A DNA stretch of 64,000 bases, from assembly GCA_021613535.1 (NCBI GenBank), contig CP075496.1, positions 13,516,001 through 13,580,000 of the forward strand, given 5' to 3'. Made by a program: the position numbers and the translations under genes. The stretch comes from Adineta vaga. Its lineage: Eukaryota; Animalia; Rotifera. The notes below the pieces were generated by a model that saw nothing but the letters and a program-made list of their open reading frames with translations, did not search any database and was not told the origin of the DNA. Below are positions 2,690-64,000 of this stretch, piece by piece (positions within the stretch are counted from its first letter, which is position 1; the number at the start of each line of letters is the position of its first letter).

Positions 2690-3200
2690 CAGTTCGGCCA
2701 GAGATTTGGAGGTGATGATGATGAATCAGTATTTGTTTCAGCAGTGGGTTTAATTATATTGGTGATTTACTTTTCCAACGCAGTAAGCCATGCTTTGAAA
2801 ATATTAATAAATTTACTGTCATTCATTTCATTGCTTTTACAATCAGAAATCTGCTTGTTTTAATTACCAAAAGTTAATGCAATAATATTAAATGCACTAT
2901 CATACTTAAAAAAGTAAATAGAATAGAATATTTTGAAAGTGTCGAGATCAGAATAAATGCTACTTGGTGTTCCTCGATAACCATTTACAACTTTTTTTGT
3001 TTGAATTAATGAGAACGTATATAAGGATATATTGTTAAGTCTGATGAATATGACTGGGGAATAATAGAGAGCAGTTTTTTCGAAGCAATGATGTATATAG
3101 AAAATTAATAAGAATCTAAATAGAAATATGTGAATGATTTTGAATGCAACTGTATATGTTATATCTTGTCGTTGTTTTTGACAAACAATAAAATTAACTT
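2690..3200 (-). pseudogene. Degraded coding-like fragment, possibly a secreted glycoside hydrolase (GH18-like N-terminus)
   Basis: The stop-interrupted reading SLIQTKKVVNGYRGTPSSIYSDLDT...YDSAFNIIALTFGN*...AWLTALEK* loosely resembles the VVGYW...YNII.LSF start of GH18 barrels. The match is weak. Confidence 0.2.
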
Positions 3201-3359
3201 GATACAAGAATGATACGAATTGATTTAGTAAAGAAAATCAGAAACATTATGTTTAAATCATATTTTTACATGAGTGATATATCGATGAAGTAGAGCAATT
3301 TCAAAGAGAATCACATCTTAGATTTAGAGTACTGTACGGGTACAACTTTTTGAATCCAA

Positions 3360-3847
3360 ATGCATCATCACATCAACAGCATCACGTTCCATATCGTGAT
3401 TCAAATTTAACTTATTTACTAAAGAATAGTCTTGGTGGTGATGCAAAAACATTTATGTTAGCAACAATTAGTCCATCATCAACAGTTATTGATGAAACAA
3501 TCAATACATTACGTTATGCTGGTCTGGCATCAACAATAACAAATGTTCCACGAATAAAAACTCCTCATCTTCGTCATGAAATTGATGAATTACGGGAAGA
3601 AAATGCTCGCCTTAAACAAGAACTATTTCTTGTCAAATCAAAATCAATGCCATCAATTCATCCAACAATTCCAATGATTAGTAAAACATCATTGACTAAT
3701 ATTGATGAAGGTATGCAAACAAGCTTTCGACTGGAACCATCGACACCAAATGATGATGATTTAAATAAGGATGAAAGTCTTGATGTTGTTGATGAAGAGG
3801 TAAAGCAATCAATTGATTTGAAAAATCATCTTTTATTTGAGAATTTT
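3360..3847 (+). pseudogene. 488-bp partial duplicate of the kinesin gene (copy of 11976-12463)
   Basis: Ungapped direct alignment with 11 mismatches by manual count. It includes 48 bp of the downstream intron (gtaaagcaatc...) and lacks the N-terminal motor exons. Confidence 0.95.
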
Positions 3848-4499
3848 TAATGCTGTTCATTTAAAATAACTTTCGTTTTGATTTTCAATTCTTAAAACGG
3901 AAACTTACGAAGCATCAACATTTCTTGCCTTTTGAAAAATAAATAAATTACATTGTAGAGCGAATTGTTTTTCGAAACCATCGTGCTTAATGAAAAGCGA
4001 GAAATAGTTAAGAGGAAAGATCGAGAACGGCACAAAACTGTCGTCTAGACGAAATGTCAACAAAAACAATCTTCGTTAAAACGAAAACAATTTTTTGAGC
4101 TGGAGAAAATGGTCTCATTAAGGCCGGAGACGTGAGTGGCATCATTGACGTCACAAAGTACCGACACGATAACAAATTACACTTGAAAAAGACACGAGTT
4201 GCTTGGTTTTTTGCAAGCAAGGAGGGAACTCACACTATAATTCAACCAGACTGGTTCTAGCCCTGCATTCAGTTATAAGCGATGCGTTGAAATTCAAAAT
4301 TACGAATTGCGAGAGTAAAAATATTGACACCATCTTTTCTTACGAAATCAATATTTACTTCACAAATACCTTTTTCTTTACGTTCTTTTTATGAATATCA
4401 AGAGATTGCACAACTGTGAGAAACTATAGAGTTGAAGGAGACAGCGACACTTTCGAGCAATAACAAGAACAATAACACACAACATATCAATACAAAACT

Positions 4500-7400
4500 A
4501 TGTCGACTTTCGTCAAATTACCGGTCGAGTTCGTTTACAGAATTCTTGATCATCTCGACGAATTCACTCTTTTTTGCTCAATGCAAAATGTGTGTCATCG
4601 ATTCAACCAAATTCTGCATACCTACCATCGATATCAAGTAAATCTGTGCTTCTATATAATACTTACTGAGGTTAAACTTCTATGGAAGATAGACGAAATC
4701 ATCCAGTGAATTAAATGGAAAGCAAGTCAGACGATCTATCCATTACAGTATTTCACTGTTCTCGCACATATCTGATGAGGACACAAAATAGATGATTAAT
4801 GTAGTTTTATGTTCTGGATCATTATCATTCTGTTAATTATTTACCTTTCGAAAGTACTTTTTGATAAAATATCCATACCTTTTTCTATGATGCTTCAGTC
4901 GGGCATGCATGGTTGAAGAACAGTACGGTCCGAACAGTGAAAAATCAGATAGCAAACTATTCACGTCAATAAACTGAATCTTGCTTTTATCCGAGCAATT
5001 GTAGAGGAAGACTTAAGTTCTCCATCAATAATACTGCAGAATCACGAGTGCACACAAAGCAGAGTAGAAGTCTATTTTTTAATAGTGTAAAAATACGTAA
5101 ATGATTGCATCCTCAATGTGGGGCAAAATTCGATGTAAAAACGGTTGAGACCAGAAGAACCGCGTTGCCAGCTACAGTGAACAACATTTCGTCTCTAAAT
5201 CTCAGAGTAGATCTCTTTCACTACATCTTGATCAATCACTATCAAAACTTCGATAGACGTTCGCTGCAATTATTTCCATCATCTGACCTCAACATGTTTT
5301 ACATACTAGCAAACACCCACCAGTACTTCTAAACTGTTCTCCCTGTTGACTCATCGCCATATCAGAAAAGATAAATAGGTAATGTTAGTGTAGCATAGAT
5401 TTCAAACATATAAACTGACTCTGGCTGAAGCAGATCTCTATACTGGCCATTCGATCGGAAAGCAAAGTGTACAGTTCTAACGAAAAAACCTCTCGAAATG
5501 AGAAAAACTTCAGATATCAGGGTAATGCCGTCTTACGGAACTTAGTTAGTAGTGAAATATCCCAGCTTGATCTAATCTCTTATTACTTTTTGAAGAAGTT
5601 ATAAGTATTTTATGGTTTCGTCAAAATACACTATTTTCTGTATGGGTTTTAAATTGTTCTTTAAAACAACGATCTGAGTAATGAATATATTTCTTTCTGG
5701 TCACAGTAAAACTTTATTCTGGGAATATTGATTGACTTGGTGCATAGAAACGTGCAGAAACAAAGAGAGTGGGACTGATAGTAGAAGATTTCTTTTTATC
5801 ACTATGTGTCCGAGAGAATCAGCTTCAAGACGTTGTTCAACAAAAAACGAGTATCGCGAATATATTCATATGGAGCTGTTTATAGCTGAAATTATAATGA
5901 CAAACTGGACGAATATGTTACCGCCGTTCAGAGAATAAGTGTTTACTAAACTATTTCAATTATCAAAAATTTGTTTACGCTACAGTATAACACACGCTTT
6001 TTTCGACCAAAAGAACAAATGACTAAAGAAAATATGATAAAAAGTAGAGGAAATCTCAAGGTCAATACGAAGGTCTCTCAGTGATCATTGATTTGTCAAT
6101 TAACCAAGACTCGTCTATACAAACGAAGAAACCAATCATTTCTTAAGAATACGAGAAACAGTCTTACCTAATGGTTCTTACACGCACGAATATGACACTG
6201 CCCTAATTTTCTCGATTCCTGACTCTATGTACAATGGCAGTCAAGCAAATCATACTGATTTTTGTGAGAATTCCAAGAATAAAGAAGATAGTATACACAA
6301 ACCAAACTTTTCCTAGACTTGATCTTTTCTTATCACGGCGTCCGCGCCTAAGTTCTATGACACCGTCATCCATAAAACATTCTAGGCTAAGTACCTATGA
6401 AAGAATGTTAAGGGTCACTTGCAACTCATATACCGCAGCGATATAATCCGACCTGTTCCCGCCTATCCCTGAAAAATGAAAACACGACCAGCATACTTCA
6501 GATATCAGTGAGGATATCAATCAACTCATTTTCTTTCAAACACAATCAAAACAACCTTCTTACGATACTACTCGAACAAAACTCTATCTTTCTCTAACTT
6601 TCTACCGAATACTACATCAATCTATCAATCCAAACGAACAACGCCACTTCTTCAGAGTCTGTTTTCCCCTCTCTTCAATCGATTCTCAAAGAAAATCTAA
6701 AAGCATATTTCAAAAGACTATAGTTTCAATAAAAAAACTTCAATCTCATCCAGAAAAAACCTACCTTAATGAAATCCCAAATCATCCATAACTTCTTCAG
6801 GGAGCAATAAGAAGATCAATCAGCTTAGGATATTTCATTACAAACTAACGACGATAATACGTACGTACTATGACTCTTAAAGATTTTTATCACATCAGAC
6901 AGGCTCCTTATTATCAGAAGCATCAGAAGTGAAGAACGTAACCTTCCTTCATTCTTCGACCGGGTCCTCCTCGCATACTCCTCTCTTGTTTAGACACTCA
7001 CAACACTAAGTCTCTGGAACAATCAAATCACACTTCAAGCAGCAGAGCACTTGGCTGATGCATTACGAGTTAACACGGTAATTGTGATTCACCCTTCGAA
7101 TGTCTCATCTTCTGATACCACTCTCTTGTTTAGACACTCACAACACTAAATCTCTGGTATAACAAAATCACCGTTCAAGAAGCAGAACACTTGGCTGATG
7201 CATTACAAGTTAATACGGTAATCTTCATTCACTGCCCGAGTGTCTTCTCATTTCATACCGCTCTCTTGTTTAGGCACTCAGAACACTCGATCTCGATTCC
7301 AACGAAATCGAAGATAAAGGAGCTCAGCATTTGGCTGATGCATTACTAGTTAACATGGTAATCTTCATTCGTTTCCCGATTGTCTTCTCCTTTCATACCG

Positions 7401-48521: not shown

Positions 48522-49487
48522 ATGCAATCATCTTTTCCATTATCAACAGTACCGATCGATACGGTTGTAATCAAAGATTCATTATCGAAAAAAGCAACTA
48601 CAACAATACCTTTACATTCATCAAATACTAAACATCAACATCATTTATATAATTATTGGACATTAACTGAACGTTTACGAGCAAAAAATGAGAAATTAGT
48701 TAAAAGACAACACTCATCATGTCGTTTAGCATTTTATAGTTTATGGTTATTTCTCTTCGGTGGTATCATGATTATTATTGTTTATCGTTTTACAGAGGAA
48801 TGTTCACTAATAACTATCGATCGTACACAATTAGTTCTACGATGTTTTCGTCATCTTTTTCTATTCGCTGCTATTTCTATAAGTATATGTGCTTGTAGTG
48901 GAATTGTATATAGTATTTGTCGATATTTTCGATCTCAACCTAAACAAATCCTTGACGATGATGAATATAAATTATATTTGACTAAAACAAATGATGTTTT
49001 ATCTACTATTCCCAGTCTTCATGCATGTTGTTATCAAGAATCAATTACTAATGGTACATCGAATTTATCATCACAGCGAATATCTAATCCGAATGATGAA
49101 CATTCAAATACAACTGCAAGTTCATCATTACAAAATACTTCACCACAACGTAAAATTCCACCATTTACATATGAAGAATTTCCATCAACTCGAACATGTC
49201 CACATTCAATATTACCAAATATTATTGTTACATCAAATCCAAATCATACTAAAAATGCTTTTTTTTCTTCTTCAACATCCGATTTATCATCTCCACAATC
49301 GAATCATTCAACAACAATAATTACAAGTATTCATCATCCTACAACAACTAATCATAACAAACGTAAATCAACACTAACATTTGAAGATCCTTGTGCAAGT
49401 ACGCCAACATCCTATACAACTTGTGCATGTGGTATTGACATCTGGGAACGACAACAAAATTCAAATATTTCATCCACATCCCACTGA
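48522..49487 (+). CDS. Uncharacterised 321-aa protein with two predicted TM helices and a Ser/Thr-rich tail
   Basis: Single-exon ORF with TM-like LAFYSLWLFLFGGIMIIIVY and LFLFAAISISICACSGIVYSIC. AATAAA overlaps the stop. Confidence 0.75.
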   Translation: MQSSFPLSTVPIDTVVIKDSLSKKATTTIPLHSSNTKHQHHLYNYWTLTERLRAKNEKLVKRQHSSCRLAFYSLWLFLFGGIMIIIVYRFTEECSLITIDRTQLVLRCFRHLFLFAAISISICACSGIVYSICRYFRSQPKQILDDDEYKLYLTKTNDVLSTIPSLHACCYQESITNGTSNLSSQRISNPNDEHSNTTASSSLQNTSPQRKIPPFTYEEFPSTRTCPHSILPNIIVTSNPNHTKNAFFSSSTSDLSSPQSNHSTTIITSIHHPTTTNHNKRKSTLTFEDPCASTPTSYTTCACGIDIWERQQNSNISSTSH

Positions 49488-50033: not shown

Positions 50034-51900
50034 TTAATTTTGTCGTTTAGGTTTCGATAAAGATTTTGCCATCAGCGCAACAAGTGCTTTCATAACATCA
50101 CCATTTGTTGATCTTAATTCTTCTATAGCTTGTTCTCTAGTGAATCCTTTTTTGGTTAATTCATTGATTGATTGTTCTGGAAAAGGAGATGGTGTTAACA
50201 TCGGTGGTTCTCTTCGTCGATGAGTTTGATTACTATCACCTAAAGATTAGAAATTCGTTTCCATGAAAAAAATAAAAACATGAGATATTCGTTTATTTAC
50301 CAGATGTTGCAATGGATTGTAAAGGATTTTCCATTTGATTGTGACCATCTGAACCGGGCGTATTCCCTGTTAATCGTGCATATAATGGTAATTCAGATTC
50401 AGGTAAAAAACTTGTTTCAACACTATTTTCAATTCGAAGAACATTCTTTTCTAAATCAATGACACACTAAAGATAAAATCAAGTCAGAATTTTCTTTCTC
50501 TTTTTTCTTCGAATTTCGTTGTTACTCGATGTCGTCGAAGCATATCAAGTCCAATTAACATATCAATCGATTGATCTTCGAGTACGGATAATGATGTAGC
50601 AAAAAACTGTTTTTCGACTTCAAGCTGTGCTAAAATAAATATCAAAGTTGACAAGGAAGAATGACATCGAATAAAGAAACAGACCTAAATGAATACGTCC
50701 AAGAATTTTTTGTGTACCAACACCTTTTGCAATTCCATGGAAACGTGTATCAACAAGACGCATGATTCCACAACGTTCGGCACATGCTTTACTCATAATG
50801 GTCATTTGTGCACCCGAATCAACAAATGCTTTTACTGAATGACCATTAATTTTACAATTCTAATGACAATTCAATCGAATTTTTTAGTTTCTATGAGAAC
50901 TATCTTACAATATAGAGCATAACAACGTTGCCGAAAAATTCCGGTGCATGTTCATAAGCATGTTCCATATTATCCATGACATTATTCATACTAATGGAAC
51001 ACATCAAATGGAAAAAATATGAAGAGAATCTTTTCTTTACTTGATACGTTCTTCAATACGTCGTTGAATATTCGGATCAAGTAGATCAAGTTCCGGTGAG
51101 CGATCTCGTCCACTCTGACGAAGTGCCATTCGATTCATAGCAACTTGCATGAATGCCACTGAGATAAGCAATACGATCGATACGGTTTTTATTCTACTTT
51201 TTATTCTACATACTCATATCATTTCGTTCAATAGCTTCGGCTAATTGAGGATCACTTTGTCGAAGTTCTTGTAGTGCTTCTGGATTAGAACGAATTTGAG
51301 CGAAAAGCTCTTGTGGGTTCGAACCTTCATAACAAAAAAAAATGTGAAGTAAACGATTACTAGAAATACAGACAACAACATACGATCCACTGGGTGCCGT
51401 GTCGAAGTCGTAGTCGTAGTTCCTCGTGAGTTTCGATTCTCATTAGCTAAAATATATGATTCAATCTTTAATAATTGAATTGAATTGTTCATCATATTTT
51501 CATCAATCAAATGTAGCATATTCAAATACAAATCAACTCACGCATCGATTCGGAAAATTAGATGATAATTATGTTTCCCTAAAAAATCATCTATGAATTG
51601 TCTTTCTCTACATTACATTTCTTCATTTCGACAAACTATTGTTTTTTTTCCTATACAAAGCTTACATAATTTTCGTTGACAAGTAACAACATCATAATCT
51701 TTAATATTTGCTTGTTCAAGTGTTTGATTTTCATCTCGAAGTAATTTCCCGTCATAATAAAGATTCATATCATTCGCTTCGATGCCAAAATCTGTTTCTG
51801 ATGTAATTATAAGTTTTAAATCTTTAATCGTTAAATCCGGCGCTATTTCTATTGTTAATAATTCTTCACTTCCACCATAATTTGCTATTGAAATATGCAT
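50034..51900 (-). CDS. DDI1: DNA-damage-inducible protein DDI1 homolog (UBL - retroviral-like protease - UBA)
   Basis: N-terminal UBL; [17 protein letters not shown]|[48 protein letters not shown]; C-terminal [32 protein letters not shown]. Confidence 0.95.
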
Positions 51901-51963
51901 CTGAAGAATACGTTTACTTCGTCGAAACAAGAAATCTCTATCTAAAACGAAAAGAATAAAGAT

Positions 51964-53518
51964 TTAACTTTTTCTTTGTTTTTTTAATATTGGTACAAAA
52001 TCTTCGTTATCATCATCTTCCTCGTCAATCTGTTGTTGAAATAAAGGTTTAGGTTGCGTATGTACATAAGCTGGTGTAACCCACGTTGGATTACGTTCAG
52101 CTTCTTCCGCGTGTTTCAACAATTCAACACGTGGATCTTCTTTTTCATTGAAATTTGATTGAATTCCTGTTTGAACTATATATTGATGTAATGAAGTTGG
52201 TTTCCTCTCTTCTTGTGGATTTCTTTCAGGTAATATGTCATGCGTTTCATCAATAGAATCTGAAGAACATGCCGATGATGCCAATGGATTAATATTTGCA
52301 ATAAAATCATCTTTTGTTTTATCTTTTCTTTCTTTTCGATTTAAACATAAACGAACACCAGCCATGGGTGATCGTTGTTCATCATAGAACACTCGAATAA
52401 GTCCATTATTTGTTGTTGTAAAAATTTGATTCAATTTCGGATGCCACATTGTTCGAATAACACTATCATTAAATGCAATTTCTTGAACAGGTTTAGATAA
52501 ATCGTTTCGATTAAAAATCATTAATTTTCCATTTGAATTCGATTGATTTAGTTTGGATACACCCGTGATGAGATATTTATCATTGGGTGAAAATGATATA
52601 TTTGTCATGGAGAAATCATTTGGAAGATTTTCATAAGATGATAAACATTGACTAAATTTTCGAATATCCCAAAGTTTTAATGTATGATCTGTTGAACGAG
52701 ATGCAAATATTTGACTATCATATGACCATTTTAATGATGTTATGAAATGATCTTGTAAATGTGCATTAGGACATTTAAATGTCACATGAACAAATGATCG
52801 ACGACGATCCCAAACAAGAATACTACCATTTTCACAACCAGCAGCAATTAAATTACAATTTTCATTTTCATACAACGATTGATTATATGTACAAGTTGTT
52901 GTTCGAACATCTCGACCCGATTCACCTTTCGTACGAATAACATCGACTTGTTGATCACGTTTATTTAATGACCAAAGACGTATTGTACAATCATCAGCAC
53001 ATGTCATAAATTCTTCGGAATTTATTGTTGGATTCCAACAACCATAATTTATTAAAGATTTATGACCTTTCGTACGATTCATATCTTTAACGTACATATC
53101 ACCAAGAACAGTTTTGTAAATAACATGTTTACCAGATCCTAAAACAATTCAATTAAAGTTTATTCCAATCAATCTCATCTTTGTTCTTACCTTCTCGATT
53201 GACTACAATAGCTTGACAATCTGCAGGAATAATTAAAATCATATCATTATTTGGTTTATATTCAATTGCTCGTAATAATCGTCCCCGACAAGGTTGAATC
53301 GTTCGAAAAGATTGAAAACTTTTATCCATCGATGAAAAATCAAACATTTTCATTGTTTCATCATGTCCACCTGTTATCATTCGAATTCCATTTGAATCTA
53401 ATGTTAAACATGAAACACTTTTCAATCCATGAATTATATTTACATGAGATGATATTGGTAATAAATCATCATTTTCTTCTTCTACTACATCACTATCACT
53501 AGAACTCGTATTCGACAT
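51964..53518 (-). CDS. WDR70: WD repeat-containing protein 70 (gad-1-like), 2 exons
   Basis: HGLKSVSCLTLDSNGIRMITGGHD..KMFDFSSMD, GDMYVKDMNRTKGH, EDPRVELLKHAEEAERNPTWVTPAYVHTQPKPLF. Confidence 0.93.
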
Positions 53519-53593
53519 CTAAAACAAGAGAAAAAAAACTGTTTATTTCAGAAGAAATATTATTGCATAGAATAAAATAGAATACGATGTTCT

Positions 53594-54642
53594 TCATACA
53601 TTATACCAATCAAGAAAGAGAAGTGAAAAAATCATAACAAGTAAGAAAAAAATCACCCAACGACGCATTTGTGCAGTATTTCTTATTGCATCACGAATAT
53701 GTATAATTGCTGCAGCTAAATCATCATTACTTGCAACAGCAGCTGTATCAACATTTTGAATAAGATCTTTCTGATTAAATATATTACCAAATAATTCATT
53801 TTGTAATTGTGCAATTTCGACGACTTGTGTTGATATTGCATGAATTTCTTCACTACGTTGTGCAACATCATGATACAATTGATTATTTTCCATTTGTAAT
53901 TGACGTAATTGATTAGCTGTTAATGGTTCAGATGGAATCTGGTTTTCTTGATCATTTTGATCGAATTGATCATTCGTCGTCATGATATTCTCTGAACTAC
54001 AAATCAAATCGTATCGAAATGATTTTTTTTTCTTTTACAAAAGGAAATTACTCTTTACCTATTTTCATTCTTTGTAGTTGAAAGTATTGTTTCAGAAGTC
54101 TTTTCAATCTTATTTTTATTATTATTTTTATCAAAATTTAACACTACTCGTAGTACATCATGATCCAATCGTCCAATTTTCTTTCGTTCAGATTCTCGTT
54201 TATATCGTAAACATTTCTGTTCACTATAAATCTTCGTACATTCAACAAGATCACGTTCTAAATAGGCACAAACTAATTCGAAATGTGAACGTCGTTGTCC
54301 TTGAAAACAAATTAATCCAATTGAAGATTTCAATTCTTCTAAATCATCTCGACAACGTTTGATTTGTTTTTCTATATGTTGTTCATAATCATGTCGTTGT
54401 TCATCATTCATAATCTTATTTGTTGTTGATAGAAGATAAATTGGACTTAAATAATTCGTACGAGATTCAAGTAAGAAACATTTCAATTTCATTATATCAT
54501 TGAGAATTAGTTTTGCTCGAGATAAAAAACCTGCCGAGATTTTTTCACTCTTTTTCGAACGCTTTGTTAAACCAAGATTAAAATCACTGGAGATCTGTTT
54601 CGCTTTGATAATAGCACGAAATGTTTTTGTTATATCTGTCAT
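53594..54642 (-). CDS. STX18: Syntaxin-18 (2 exons)
   Basis: MTDITKTFRAIIKA N-peptide; FLLESRTNYL..MNDEQR; SNARE VVEIAQLQNELF; C-terminal TM WVIFFLLVMIFSLLFLDWYN. Confidence 0.93.
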
Positions 54643-54840
54643 CTAGAAAGTAGAAGAGAAGATTTCAGTTGTTTTTAACAATCATTTATTCATATAACAT
54701 AGAACGAGATCTTTCAAAGATCGATACAGAATACGAACAACTAATTTTATCTTGTTGTTGTTTACAAAAATGAAAATATAGATGGGTGGGTTTGTTTTTC
54801 TCTACAATTTAAACATGAAAACGAGATTTTCGACTTTTTT

Positions 54841-56108
54841 CTATGGTTTTTCATTAACATTATCTTCGTCATCATTACGTTTACGTTTTTCACCTTTTGA
54901 TGACCCTAAATTTAGAATAGAATTAATAGAAAATGATTCGTTTGAGATAAGATTTACCTTCGATAGGACCTGCTGGAATATCTTCTTCAGATAAATCATC
55001 ATCTTCATCTAAAAATACGAAGAAATCAATCAGATTTTCAAGTGAAATTAAATCTAAACTTACCCGATTCTTCTTGTTCTTCTTCTTCATTTCCTTCATA
55101 GCTTTCTTCATCATCATCACCTTCTTCGAATGTACCATTATACAATGCTTTTAAACCAGTTTTACTTTCATCCTATAAATATTTACATGTAAAACAACAA
55201 GTCCTTACAAACATCTGAAATTCTATGTCTTACCTCTTCATATTCTTCTTCTTCTTCATCACCGTCATCATCTCCTAAATAACGAACAATACAACTTTCG
55301 AAAATAGTATTAGAAATTTATCTTACCTTCATCCGATCCAGCATTTTCATCATCTTCATCTTCATCATCACTATCTCGTTCCACTAAAACGAAATTGTCA
55401 TATTAAAAACCAAACAGATCTTTATTCTTACCACCAGTTTTATCAACATTATCTAAATACTTCAATTGTGGTAATATTTCAAACATTGTTTCTCGATAAC
55501 CATCAATCGATGTTACATCACAATTTGCTAAATCAAGAATTGATAATTTTGGTAATTTTGCCTATGTTTCAAAACAAAAGAAAAATTTTAAGGTAACACA
55601 ATTTTGTTTGACTTACTAATGGTTTAAGTTCATCAATAGTTTTGAATTTATTTCCAGCGAGAATCAATAAGGATAAATTTGGACAACCTTCAAGATTTTC
55701 TAATCCAGAACTTAAACGATTATACTAAGATAAAGCTAGAAAGAAATATATAAATAATTTATTCATTTCAATCAGATTGAATTCATTTCGTACTTTTCGA
55801 AGATTAGGTAATGCAGGAAATTTTGCAAGTGATTGAAGACCAACATTGATTATTGAAAGAACTTGTAAATTAATGAATTCATCTGTTAAACCTTGAATAT
55901 AACTACAACGTGCACAATTATCTAATACAAGTTCAGTTATCTAATAGAAAGAAGAATGAAGTCGAAAACAAAAAATATTGAGAGAGAGAGAGATCAAAAT
56001 ACGAACTGTATTTGGTTCACGACGTTTTAATTCGAGAGAAACACGTTGTGCCATTGGATTTTGTTCAGTAGCAACAATATTTTCATCTTGTACATTTTGT
56101 TCAGACAT
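54841..56108 (-). CDS. ANP32: Acidic leucine-rich nuclear phosphoprotein 32 family (ANP32/Mapmodulin)
   Basis: MAQRVSLELKRR..ITELVLDNC..IQGLTDEFINLQVLS..FPALPNLRK..YRETMFEILPQLKYLD, an acidic tail and the GEKRKR NLS. Confidence 0.93.
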
Positions 56109-56828
56109 GATGATGATGAAACAGATAAACTATTGCTATTTCTTTCGAATAGATACTTTGAAAAAGAAAATCAGACGATGAATTACTTGAAAATTGTTGG
56201 AAAAGACACTGAAGAGAACAATGGACAACATTGCAAGAAATGTCAAATAGTATTCGTTTCACGTTAGATGGCGTTAGTATACCAAAAAACTGACGTGTTG
56301 AATTTCTAATATTAAAAAATGGATATGTAAGATATTTGTTGAATTCAATCATTTTTCATGAATACTTTCTAAAGTTTAGTAAAAGATATATGTGAATAAA
56401 TGAATTAATCAAAATGGTTCTTGTCGTTAGACGAGTTTCAAACAAACATAAAATAATATGTACCTTTCAAGATGTATTAAGAGAATGTTCTTGAAACGTT
56501 ATTTTACTTAGTAAAGATCGTGACAAAATGAAACAACTTCATTATCAATATATCCATTCATCCCGTTATCGAAATAACATGTAAATATAGAAAATAATCA
56601 GTTTACAAATCAAGCAAAACATGTGGGGAAAAAACAACAATCACCTTTTTCGTGTATGTATCTTGTGTAGATAAGGCATCTTGTCATCAAACTTCCAAAC
56701 ATGTTTGTTTGTTGTTTTAGAACTGATTTTATTCAACAAAACACTGTTATTTTGACTAGTACACTCGTAAACATTTTCCTGGAAAACTATAACATTCGCA
56801 TAATCAAGTATTAAAAGAATTAATATTC

Positions 56829-59601
<2,773 letters not shown>

Positions 59602-61753: not shown

Positions 61754-62281
61754 ATATAATGGTTTAAAGTAACATATAATCTACAAACATATAATACATC
61801 AAACAGTTATTTTTACAGCAAAAATATGCGAAATGCAAAGTAAAAGTAACTTGACTGTTATTAGATGAGTCATCATCTTATGATCGGTGTAGATTGATCG
61901 ACCAATCAGAGAATGAATTCGACATTTTCGAATGAAATTATTTTTCTAAGAAATTCCATATATTTTAATCGAAGATATGCTCAGAATCGATCTAGAATAT
62001 CGAAGAGTAAGTTGTTTAATCACAGAATTTAAATAATTCATTCTGATTGGTTGCTGAGCTTGTATGAGTAATGAAACCAATGGTTGAAGCTAAAAAATTG
62101 AAAAATATATCGAGTTTGTTTTGAAATTATTATCAGAAGGAAAATATCCGTCATAATGTTATTTTTTTTTCTCTCTTAATCAAGTAAAACAAATTGTCAA
62201 TACTCGTTGTCTTATCTTAGTTATGCATTAAGATTCTTGTTTTATTTAATCTTTAAATGATCATCATACCTCTATTTTTAG
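61754..62281. promoter_or_regulatory. Bidirectional promoter between KAT5 and PSMD5 with CCAAT boxes
   Basis: Head-to-head genes about 530 bp apart, with CCAAT at about 61902, ATTGG at about 62046 and CCAAT at about 62077. Confidence 0.55.
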
Positions 62282-64000
62282 ATGCAAAATAGTAATCTTC
62301 TTCGTCTTTTCGAAGATCTTTTAATAACTACAACAGATACTCAACGTATCGAATTGCTCGAACGTATTCATATTGAATTGTCAAGTATAACTTCATCGAT
62401 TCAATTTGAACAAGTTTATCAACATATTCCATGGACTTTTCTATTCGATCTCTTTCGATCAAATAAAAACGATGAAGTCGAACGTCTTCTATGTTCAATA
62501 AGCGAATATTTCGTAAATAATCTATCAATTGAACAAATAATGACGAATTTCTATCCATTATTAAATACTGGTTTAGACCAACAAAGCGAATTTTCTTATC
62601 GTGTTAAACTTCTTTGTTTGAAAGCATTTGCAAAATTAAGTCATTGTTCAAAATCCGAATGCTTTTATGTTATACAAAATCTCTTTCAACATTCTCATAT
62701 TCGTTCATTACTTCATCTGTTTCTCGATAGTGATCAACAAACTTTATGGTTAAAATCAAAAGAAATTCTTGAACAAATGATTCAAACAGTCACTCGTATT
62801 GATAATATAGAAGTATTTCATAAATATTTACGGGAAGAATATTTTCATGAAGAAAATCGACAAATTTTACTTTCATCAAAACAACGAAATGAAATTGTTA
62901 AACTTCGTCTATATGAATATTTAATTGATTTATGTTTGATTGATTCAAGAATTTATCAACATATAACAGAAGAACAACATTTACTTGATGAATTCTTATA
63001 TGATTGTACACATAGTGATAATGATATGTTATATTTAATGAATTGTTTAGAATTATTAACAGCATTAACACAAAAATCACATACTCTAATGTATTTACAA
63101 AATAAAACTAATGTTATTGAACATTATTTACAATTGTTATTAACATCAAATGATGAAAATAGTTTATATGAATTAGTCAAACCAGGTTTTATTAAATTTT
63201 TCGGTTGTTATTTACGTAATTATCTTGTATTGATTCAAACGAATTCATCAAATAATCAATTATTTGAACGATTCTTACCATTTCTATTAGATCTACTTAT
63301 TCAATCTGATAACAATGCTTATATTGCCATTGGTTTAGGTAAAACTAATACATTTTCTATTTCTCATCTTGTCTTTCCTCTCTCTATGTTAGATACAATT
63401 GGTTTTATTGGTAAAACACTTCATGGAAAAGAATATATGTTATCCATAGCAAAATTCGGTGATTTTATTGAAAAATTAATTCAAATAATACGTTCAGCAC
63501 AATCAGATTTTCGGTTAACTATTCATCATGAACGAATCATTCTAAAATTTGACATTTTTTCTTCTTGTATTTCAGTCTTCGTTCACTTGCTTGTCTTGCT
63601 GATCTATTCTATATATCATCAAATGATCGAACATCAACAAATATTTCAAATCTTACTGAACAAATCTATCGTTTATGTAATCGAGTATTTTCAATTTTAC
63701 CAATTTTAATTCAAATAGCGAAACAACCATTTGTCGATCTACGTTTGGCTGCTTATCGTTGTTTACTTGAATTAACACGATCATCATGGGCATTAAATGC
63801 AATGAATAATGAACCCGGTTTTATTGAATTTCTCCTCAATCGTTCGACAGAAAAGGATAAAGAAGGAAAAGAAACGAAATATGCAATAATTCATTCAATG
63901 TGTGAAAATAGTGAAGAAGCGAAACTAGCTTTCGGAAATGTTAATTTCCTTAAACTGAGACGTTATCTTAATGAAGGAGCTTTTTATGTTGAACCAGAAG
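62282..64000 (+). CDS. PSMD5: 26S proteasome assembly chaperone PSMD5 (S5b/Hsm3); runs off the window end
   Basis: ARM/HEAT-like body; DTIGFIGKTLHGK; IAKQPFVDLRLAAYR...PGFIEFLLNRSTEKDKEGKETKY...LRRYLNEGAFYV. Confidence 0.9.

Follow-up and report, generated by a model that had tools for sequence, protein, structure and literature searches.

An operon-like gene cluster with splice acceptors abutting start codons in the bdelloid rotifer Adineta vaga

Operons whose RNAs are resolved by spliced leader (SL) trans-splicing have been described in a short list of animal groups. The locus considered here, a run of four genes (ANP32, STX18, WDR70-like, and DDI1) in the bdelloid rotifer Adineta vaga, is most readily compared with the operons of the tunicates Ciona intestinalis and Oikopleura dioica, in which unrelated housekeeping genes lie head to tail and a single SL serves monocistronic genes and operons alike (PMC1488885). 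Intercistronic distance is 0 nt in Ciona and 23-30 nt in Oikopleura, and most upstream cistrons in both animals lack an AATAAA (PMC1488885). The criteria used to recognize Ciona operons include genomic structure, an unresolved dicistronic cDNA, and an SL-bearing downstream cDNA; for Ciona operons without intercistronic DNA, it has been proposed that processing gives either mRNA but not both (PMC1488885).

In the SL2-type operons of Caenorhabditis elegans, co-oriented genes share one promoter, and the poly(A) signal of a cistron is succeeded by the acceptor at which the next one is trans-spliced; these operons have intercistronic regions of ~100 nt and a dedicated leader, SL2 (PMC1488885, PMC7668243). 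The SL1-type operons of the same animal have no intercistronic sequence, keep an AATAAA upstream, and have been likened to the Ciona operons that lack intercistronic DNA (PMC1488885). SL trans-splicing is also prevalent in the chaetognath Paraspadella gotoi, like the rotifers a gnathiferan, in which operons, called at gaps <250 bp and enriched for housekeeping functions, account for 18% of genes (PMC12460157). Its SL differs in sequence from that of bdelloids, and independent origins are assumed in the same paper, which appeared in 2025, mentions rotifers only when listing lineages with trans-splicing and operonic transcription, and contains no rotifer operon data. Our search of the literature found no description of a bdelloid operon. 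SL trans-splicing itself, however, has been known in bdelloids since 2005, and >50% of bdelloid mRNAs are trans-spliced (PMC1925144, citing Pouchkina-Stantcheva and Tunnacliffe 2005).

The window analyzed here is a 64-kb stretch of the A. vaga assembly (100.8 Mb, six contigs). An initial annotation of this stretch had proposed that the four genes form a polycistronic unit processed by SL trans-splicing. SL genes elsewhere in the genome, conservation of the cluster and of the junctions between acceptors and start codons, and a contig of a related species that carries two of the genes in spliced form all favor that proposal, and the part of it that fails is the acceptor named for DDI1. We consider it likely that the locus is an SL-resolved operon, best supported for STX18 > WDR70-like and probably spanning ANP32 > STX18 > WDR70-like > DDI1.

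Gene order and conservation of the cluster

All four genes are transcribed from the minus strand in the order ANP32 > STX18 > WDR70-like > DDI1, and the stop-to-ATG gaps, when re-measured, are exactly those reported in the initial annotation, 198, 75, and 63 nt. The first cistron, ANP32-like (54841-56108; ATG at 56108, stop TAG at 54843-54841), encodes leucine-rich repeats (LRR) and an acidic tail. It is followed by STX18 (53594-54642; ATG at 54642, stop TGA at 53596-53594), whose exons occupy 54642-54059 and 53996-53594, and by WDR70-like (51964-53518; ATG at 53518, stop TAA at 51966-51964), which encodes 500 aa in exons 53518-53191 and 53138-51964. DDI1 is the last cistron (50034-51900; ATG at 51900, stop ending at 50034). 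As in the tunicate operons, these are unrelated housekeeping genes arranged head to tail, and they show the very short spacers between co-oriented genes that are expected of any SL-resolved metazoan operon.

The gene identities assigned earlier hold. Pfam matches place a Syntaxin-18_N domain in the STX18 product, a WD40 propeller in the WDR70-like product, and ubiquitin-like, retropepsin-type Asp_protease, and UBA domains in the DDI1 product. The match is weaker for ANP32, whose exons, searched singly, give weak LRR matches; its A. ricciae orthologue matches LRR_9. The large exon of WDR70-like matches the deposited A. vaga protein I4U23_021479 at 100% identity; this 500-aa model corresponds exactly to the two exons given above and starts at ATG 53518. 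The canonical WDR70, of 646 aa, is I4U23_025936 on chromosome 5 (12479084-12480509); the gene of the cluster is a short paralogue whose protein is ~44% identical to it. STX18 is single-copy in the A. vaga genome.

The cluster is conserved among bdelloids. In A. ricciae, the four genes are arranged and oriented identically, 195, 114, and 61 nt apart, and in a bdelloid common in activated-sludge metagenomes, an AAA-ATPase gene, ANP32, STX18, WDR70-like, and DDI1 follow one another as they do in A. vaga. Parts of the cluster are seen in other metagenomic bdelloid contigs: the WDR70-like > DDI1 adjacency is kept in six (L020, L027, L029, L030, L034, and L036), and that of STX18 > WDR70-like in L021, L024, L026, and L046, even where STX18 identity has dropped to 55-65%. 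A. ricciae has further copies of the locus, at which the annotation fuses STX18 and WDR70-like into proteins of 818 and 799 aa (P0070 and P0072). The tiny spacer has probably misled the annotation here, and such fused models are a typical symptom of operon-like packing.

The cluster is bounded upstream by the co-oriented AAA-ATPase gene (stop at 56829), which has its own AATAAA at 56733-56728, and downstream by a convergent gene at 48522-49487 on the plus strand. The long 5' region that had been noted for ANP32 is real: 720 nt separate the AAA-ATPase stop from the ANP32 ATG (56109-56828, minus strand). This segment is the candidate promoter of the unit, and a block within it, at ~56290-56230, is common to A. 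vaga and A. ricciae.

Splice acceptors, poly(A) signals, and a dicistronic contig

SL genes in the organism are likewise expected of any SL-resolved operon. The bdelloid SL is present in A. vaga: a search with the published 23-nt sequence (PMC3795323, Table 1) finds 59 copies genome-wide (30 forward, 29 reverse) with one or two mismatches, whereas the same query read backwards finds 0. One SL sequence dominates among the copies. The bdelloid SL ends in ...CTTACCAAGAG at its 3' side, and in the one copy inspected (L001, 1500-1680), a GT donor directly follows it. No SL copy lies inside the window, even when up to 3 mismatches are allowed. SL genes often occur in head-to-head pairs whose SL starts are 154 bp apart, and a variant with C10A, found in 9 copies, is often the partner of a canonical copy. 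An Rfam match to MIR821 on an SL gene pair is below the gathering score and was rejected as an artefact of the inverted repeat. We know of no operon-specific SL in bdelloids.

Each of the three acceptor strings quoted in the initial annotation is found directly before the ATG of STX18, WDR70-like, or DDI1. When the pattern is defined as at least 8 pyrimidines in 10 nt, then AG, immediately upstream of ATG, only 14 of the window's 3005 ATGs (0.47%), counted over both strands, have it, yet these include all three downstream gene starts. The acceptor-ATG pattern thus exceeds chance. The four longest open reading frames (ORFs) among the 14 begin at the STX18, WDR70-like, and DDI1 starts and at a gene start elsewhere in the window; there, at 62266-62284 on the plus strand, a pyrimidine tract and AG are fused to ATG 62282, which opens a frame of 475 codons.

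At STX18, the pyrimidine tract and AG (54643-54664, minus strand; AG at 54644-54643) abut the ATG, and the AG|ATG is kept in this layout in 9 of 9 independent bdelloid loci. At WDR70-like, where the tract and AG occupy 53519-53541 on the minus strand (AG at 53520-53519), AG|ATG is kept in 8 of 8 independent lineages as an invariant TT..AGATG, while the mean identity of the spacer is just 37%. With the DDI1 site discussed below, an unpaired 3' splice acceptor precedes every downstream cistron (at 54643, 53519, and 51942) and is conserved in 8-15 loci. The ANP32 ATG, on the other hand, lacks a preceding AG in all four copies compared, each of which reads catcATG (after catcatc), as would fit a promoter-proximal first cistron. 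One Logan contig of ambiguous type, L025, begins 12 nt before the STX18 ATG and carries the genomic acceptor.

Canonical poly(A) signals stand close to these acceptors. The AATAAA of ANP32 (54685-54690, minus strand) is 40 nt from the AG of the STX18 acceptor, and that of STX18 (53542-53547, minus strand) is 21 nt from the AG of WDR70-like; both are kept in A. ricciae. These distances would leave at most ~25 nt between a cleavage site and the AG, which, together with the single dominant SL, resembles the tunicate arrangement of one leader and little or no intercistronic sequence. Having AATAAA at two of its three junctions, the A. vaga cluster differs from tunicate operons, as it does in belonging to the phylum Rotifera, in having an unrelated SL, and in being a unit known here from sequence. 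The spacers are also shorter than those of C. elegans SL2-type operons, although the co-oriented genes, the candidate single promoter, and the succession of poly(A) signal and acceptor are as in that system.

The 3' untranslated region (3'UTR) of STX18 also contains a motif, TATGCAATAATATT (53556-53569, minus strand), which lies ~50 nt before the WDR70-like ATG, is conserved in 5 of 8 lineages, and is degenerate in a sixth. As a general intercistronic motif it was rejected, given 8 matches genome-wide versus 4 for the reversed control. Since there is no genome-wide enrichment, TATGCAATAATATT is a locus-specific element.

A contig of 2091 nt, L022 (JGI sample 3300031231), joins the two central genes. 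It was found through a 499-aa WDR70-like protein (P0088) and contains the last 155 codons of STX18, a 74-nt spacer, the entire WDR70-like gene, and 49 nt more. Both the STX18 and WDR70-like introns are precisely missing from it, and the spacer is retained, ending in a pyrimidine tract and AG|ATG. The closest genomic relatives (L027, L029, and L030; 90-92% nucleotide identity) align with L022 to the exon junction and then carry the WDR70-like intron, and all close STX18 relatives yield ORFs limited to exon 1 and so have the STX18 intron. With introns missing, the spacer kept, and relatives that have the introns, L022 looks like a cis-spliced, unresolved dicistronic RNA. Of the evidence used for Ciona operons, the genomic structure is found in A. 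vaga itself and a putative dicistronic cDNA in a relative only.

The DDI1 junction and the chromosome-1 ohnologue

The WDR70-like > DDI1 junction is where the initial annotation has to be revised. The acceptor that it named for DDI1, ttcttcAG|ATG (51901-51911, minus strand; AG at 51902-51901), is indeed present in A. vaga, but the cagATG is missing in every other species compared; the DDI1 start of A. ricciae, for example, reads gtcaaaATG. A different pyrimidine tract and AG (51942-51963, minus strand; AG at 51943-51942), which comes 21 nt after WDR70-like ends and leaves 41 nt to the DDI1 ATG, is kept as AG|AT in 15 loci, including the A. vaga ohnologue described below and loci without WDR70-like upstream. 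Judging from this conservation, the AG at 51943-51942 is likely to be the true DDI1 acceptor. The stretch between it and the DDI1 ATG contains no ATG in 556 nt summed over the 15 loci, compared with 11 in equal stretches just upstream, as expected of a 5'UTR.

In most species, an AATAAA or ATTAAA lies just 3' of the conserved DDI1 acceptor; in A. vaga there is AGTAAA alone (51918-51913). L022 extends beyond this acceptor and ends 9 nt after a hexamer resembling a poly(A) signal. Because the DDI1 acceptor is upstream of the signal-like hexamers, the WDR70-like mRNA would overlap, at its 3' end, with the beginning of the DDI1 mRNA. In having its acceptor 21 nt after the stop and before such hexamers, the junction resembles C. 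elegans SL1-type operons, from which it differs in that the A. vaga acceptor apparently precedes the poly(A) signal rather than lying beside the cleavage site.

Second copies of ANP32 and DDI1 are present on chromosome 1 (L045, chromosome 1, 1304000-1312000; the locus is at 2990-6890 of this segment). In this ohnologue, ANP32 is followed, after ~525 nt of unrelated sequence, by DDI1, and STX18 and WDR70-like are both absent. No relics of STX18 or WDR70-like were detected in the chromosome-1 gap, where the ANP32 3'UTR element alone aligns. The same two-gene layout is found in five metagenomic contigs. In the chromosome-1 copy and in two of these contigs (L028 and L038), the ANP32 3'UTR keeps conserved blocks, the AATAAA, and an acceptor-like ttctagATA at the would-be STX18 start. 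That such acceptor modules are kept in ohnologous loci suggests that they are old. Because the ohnologue also keeps the DDI1 acceptor, along with the ANP32 poly(A) signal and the ttctagATA relic, the unit may be older than the bdelloid genome duplication. The distance of ~525 nt in the ohnologue suggests that DDI1 may also use a promoter of its own.

In L045, L028, and L038, the acceptor-like sequence after the ANP32 AATAAA reads ttcttctagATA. Other elements of these loci deserve mention. The L045 gap also has a minus-strand pyrimidine tract, AG, and ATG leading into a short ORF, which is conserved between L028 and L038. A hairpin of the form GATCTT nnn AAGATC (54708-54722, minus strand), with a 6-bp stem and a 3-nt loop, is found in the ANP32 3'UTR and again at 5606-5620 of L018 and 4403-4417 of L045. 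Both ohnologues and six species share this hairpin. Its loop is variable, and a single A>G substitution in the stem preserves pairing as G-U.

ANP32 itself may be decaying. At the start of its exon 3 (55722-55735, minus strand), comparison with three homologues (A. ricciae, the A. vaga chromosome-1 copy, and L019) reveals a 1-nt deletion near 55723. If the canonical acceptor is used (exon start 55735), only seven codons are read before a TAA; splicing to an alternative AG at 55726-55725 would keep the reading frame open at a cost of four codons of LRR. The deletion could be an error of the assembly, or ANP32 could be a pseudogene or have shifted its acceptor.

Proposed processing of the unit and alternative explanations

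In the model that we favor, RNA polymerase II would start in the 720-nt region before ANP32 and read through all four genes. Each upstream mRNA would be cleaved and polyadenylated at the signal 21-40 nt before the next acceptor, and the bdelloid SL, of 22-23 nt, would be spliced to the AG of the next cistron, providing its cap. Since the AG abuts the AUG at STX18 and WDR70-like, the SL would make up their entire 5'UTR; the resulting junction would read ...GAG|AUG, with a purine at -3 and no AUG within the SL. DDI1 would most likely use the AG at 51943-51942 and so receive a 41-nt, AUG-free leader. With this AG upstream of the hexamers of WDR70-like, one precursor may give either the WDR70-like or the DDI1 mRNA, but not both.

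What has been observed is a cluster with a conserved geometry, a genome with SL genes, and, in a relative, a spliced contig that spans two cistrons; from these we infer the single promoter, the addition of SL at the downstream acceptors, and the order in which processing takes place. For STX18 > WDR70-like, the chances that the pair is an SL-resolved operon are good. That all four genes share a single promoter is a question on which we are evenly divided; the four-gene unit is rated below the pair because DDI1 tolerates a longer, possibly promoter-bearing upstream region.

Several results weigh against an operon. L022 comes from another, related species and is 81% identical in nucleotide sequence to the window; its sample may be a forest-soil eukaryote metatranscriptome, and a literature search on the JGI identifiers gave nothing on the type of sample. 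Single intron losses also occur in the genomic DNA of other lineages: the WDR70-like intron has been lost from genomic DNA of the sludge bdelloid (L019/L047, 8001-9497), and the STX18 intron is missing in three more distant lineages, including L026 (745-1821) and L046 (5355-6347). Intron presence in these two genes varies by bdelloid lineage. No SL was found on the retrieved contigs of STX18, WDR70-like, and DDI1 relatives, which are genomic apart from one that is RNA-like (L022). To these points can be added the TAA reached by the ANP32 frame from the canonical acceptor and the lack of a canonical poly(A) signal for WDR70-like before the DDI1 acceptor. Internal promoters may also exist within the unit, given the chromosome-1 ohnologue that lacks both central genes and a TATATAAA box after the conserved DDI1 acceptor in some species. 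Among the database proteins listed, there is no SL-derived N-terminal peptide; nearly all begin at Met, and four partial STX18 ORFs begin within the gene.

A rival explanation is that the genes are tightly packed but independent, each with a short outron that SL trans-splicing at these acceptors would remove, and that the dicistronic RNA is a product of occasional read-through. Trans-splicing of over half of bdelloid mRNAs, regardless of gene arrangement (PMC1925144), is compatible with this, as is a DDI1 acceptor that is conserved even where WDR70-like is not upstream. Promoter elements can be proposed as well: one may be a conserved block of the TATGCAAT type that stands 50 nt ahead of the WDR70-like start, and with a TATA-like box after the DDI1 acceptor in several species, the DDI1 element is possibly an initiator/TATA. 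However, A. vaga has kept the pyrimidine tract and AG of this element but not its TATA-like part. Furthermore, with AATAAA only 21-40 nt from the acceptors, a promoter and start site would need to sit within coding sequence or a 3'UTR, and L022, which is RNA-like in being cis-spliced, is continuous over the spacer. Independent transcription throughout therefore seems unlikely to us, although it is the strongest of the rival explanations.

If the acceptors instead served cis-splicing, from upstream non-coding 5' exons or from exons of the upstream gene, fusion or chimeric transcripts could result, and the fused STX18-WDR70 models of A. ricciae (e.g., that of 818 aa) might be read as such. But an in-frame TAG is the codon preceding the ATG of both STX18 and WDR70-like, L022 keeps the whole spacer rather than splicing over it, the gaps are too small for a 5' exon, and the deposited A. 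vaga WDR70-like model is separate, starting at ATG 53518. We therefore regard cis-splicing as very improbable. Finally, T-rich tracts are common in a gene-dense, AT-rich genome, and functionless acceptors might lie between genes that are close by chance. Against this stand the rarity of the motif among ATGs of the window compared with its presence at three of three downstream starts, and the conservation of the acceptors over 8-9 lineages and an ancient ohnologue pair while the flanking spacer diverged; chance proximity has almost no claim on our belief.

Our favored reading of an SL-resolved operon can be extended to a broader statement: that bdelloids have genuine tunicate-like operons resolved by an SL that itself makes up the whole 5'UTR, and that this unit predates the bdelloid genome duplication and may now run on the promoter of a decaying ANP32. 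We would put the odds of this combined statement at about even.

If the operon is confirmed, rotifers would join the short list of operon-bearing animal groups (nematodes, tunicates, flatworms, and chaetognaths), and the finding would bear on whether SL trans-splicing automatically leads to operons. It would also explain how annotations go wrong, as with the 818-aa STX18-WDR70 chimeras of A. ricciae. With four genes in one ohnologue and two in the other, the locus is a natural experiment, and an operon here would allow the idea that operons hasten recovery from arrested states to be tested in an animal that survives desiccation.

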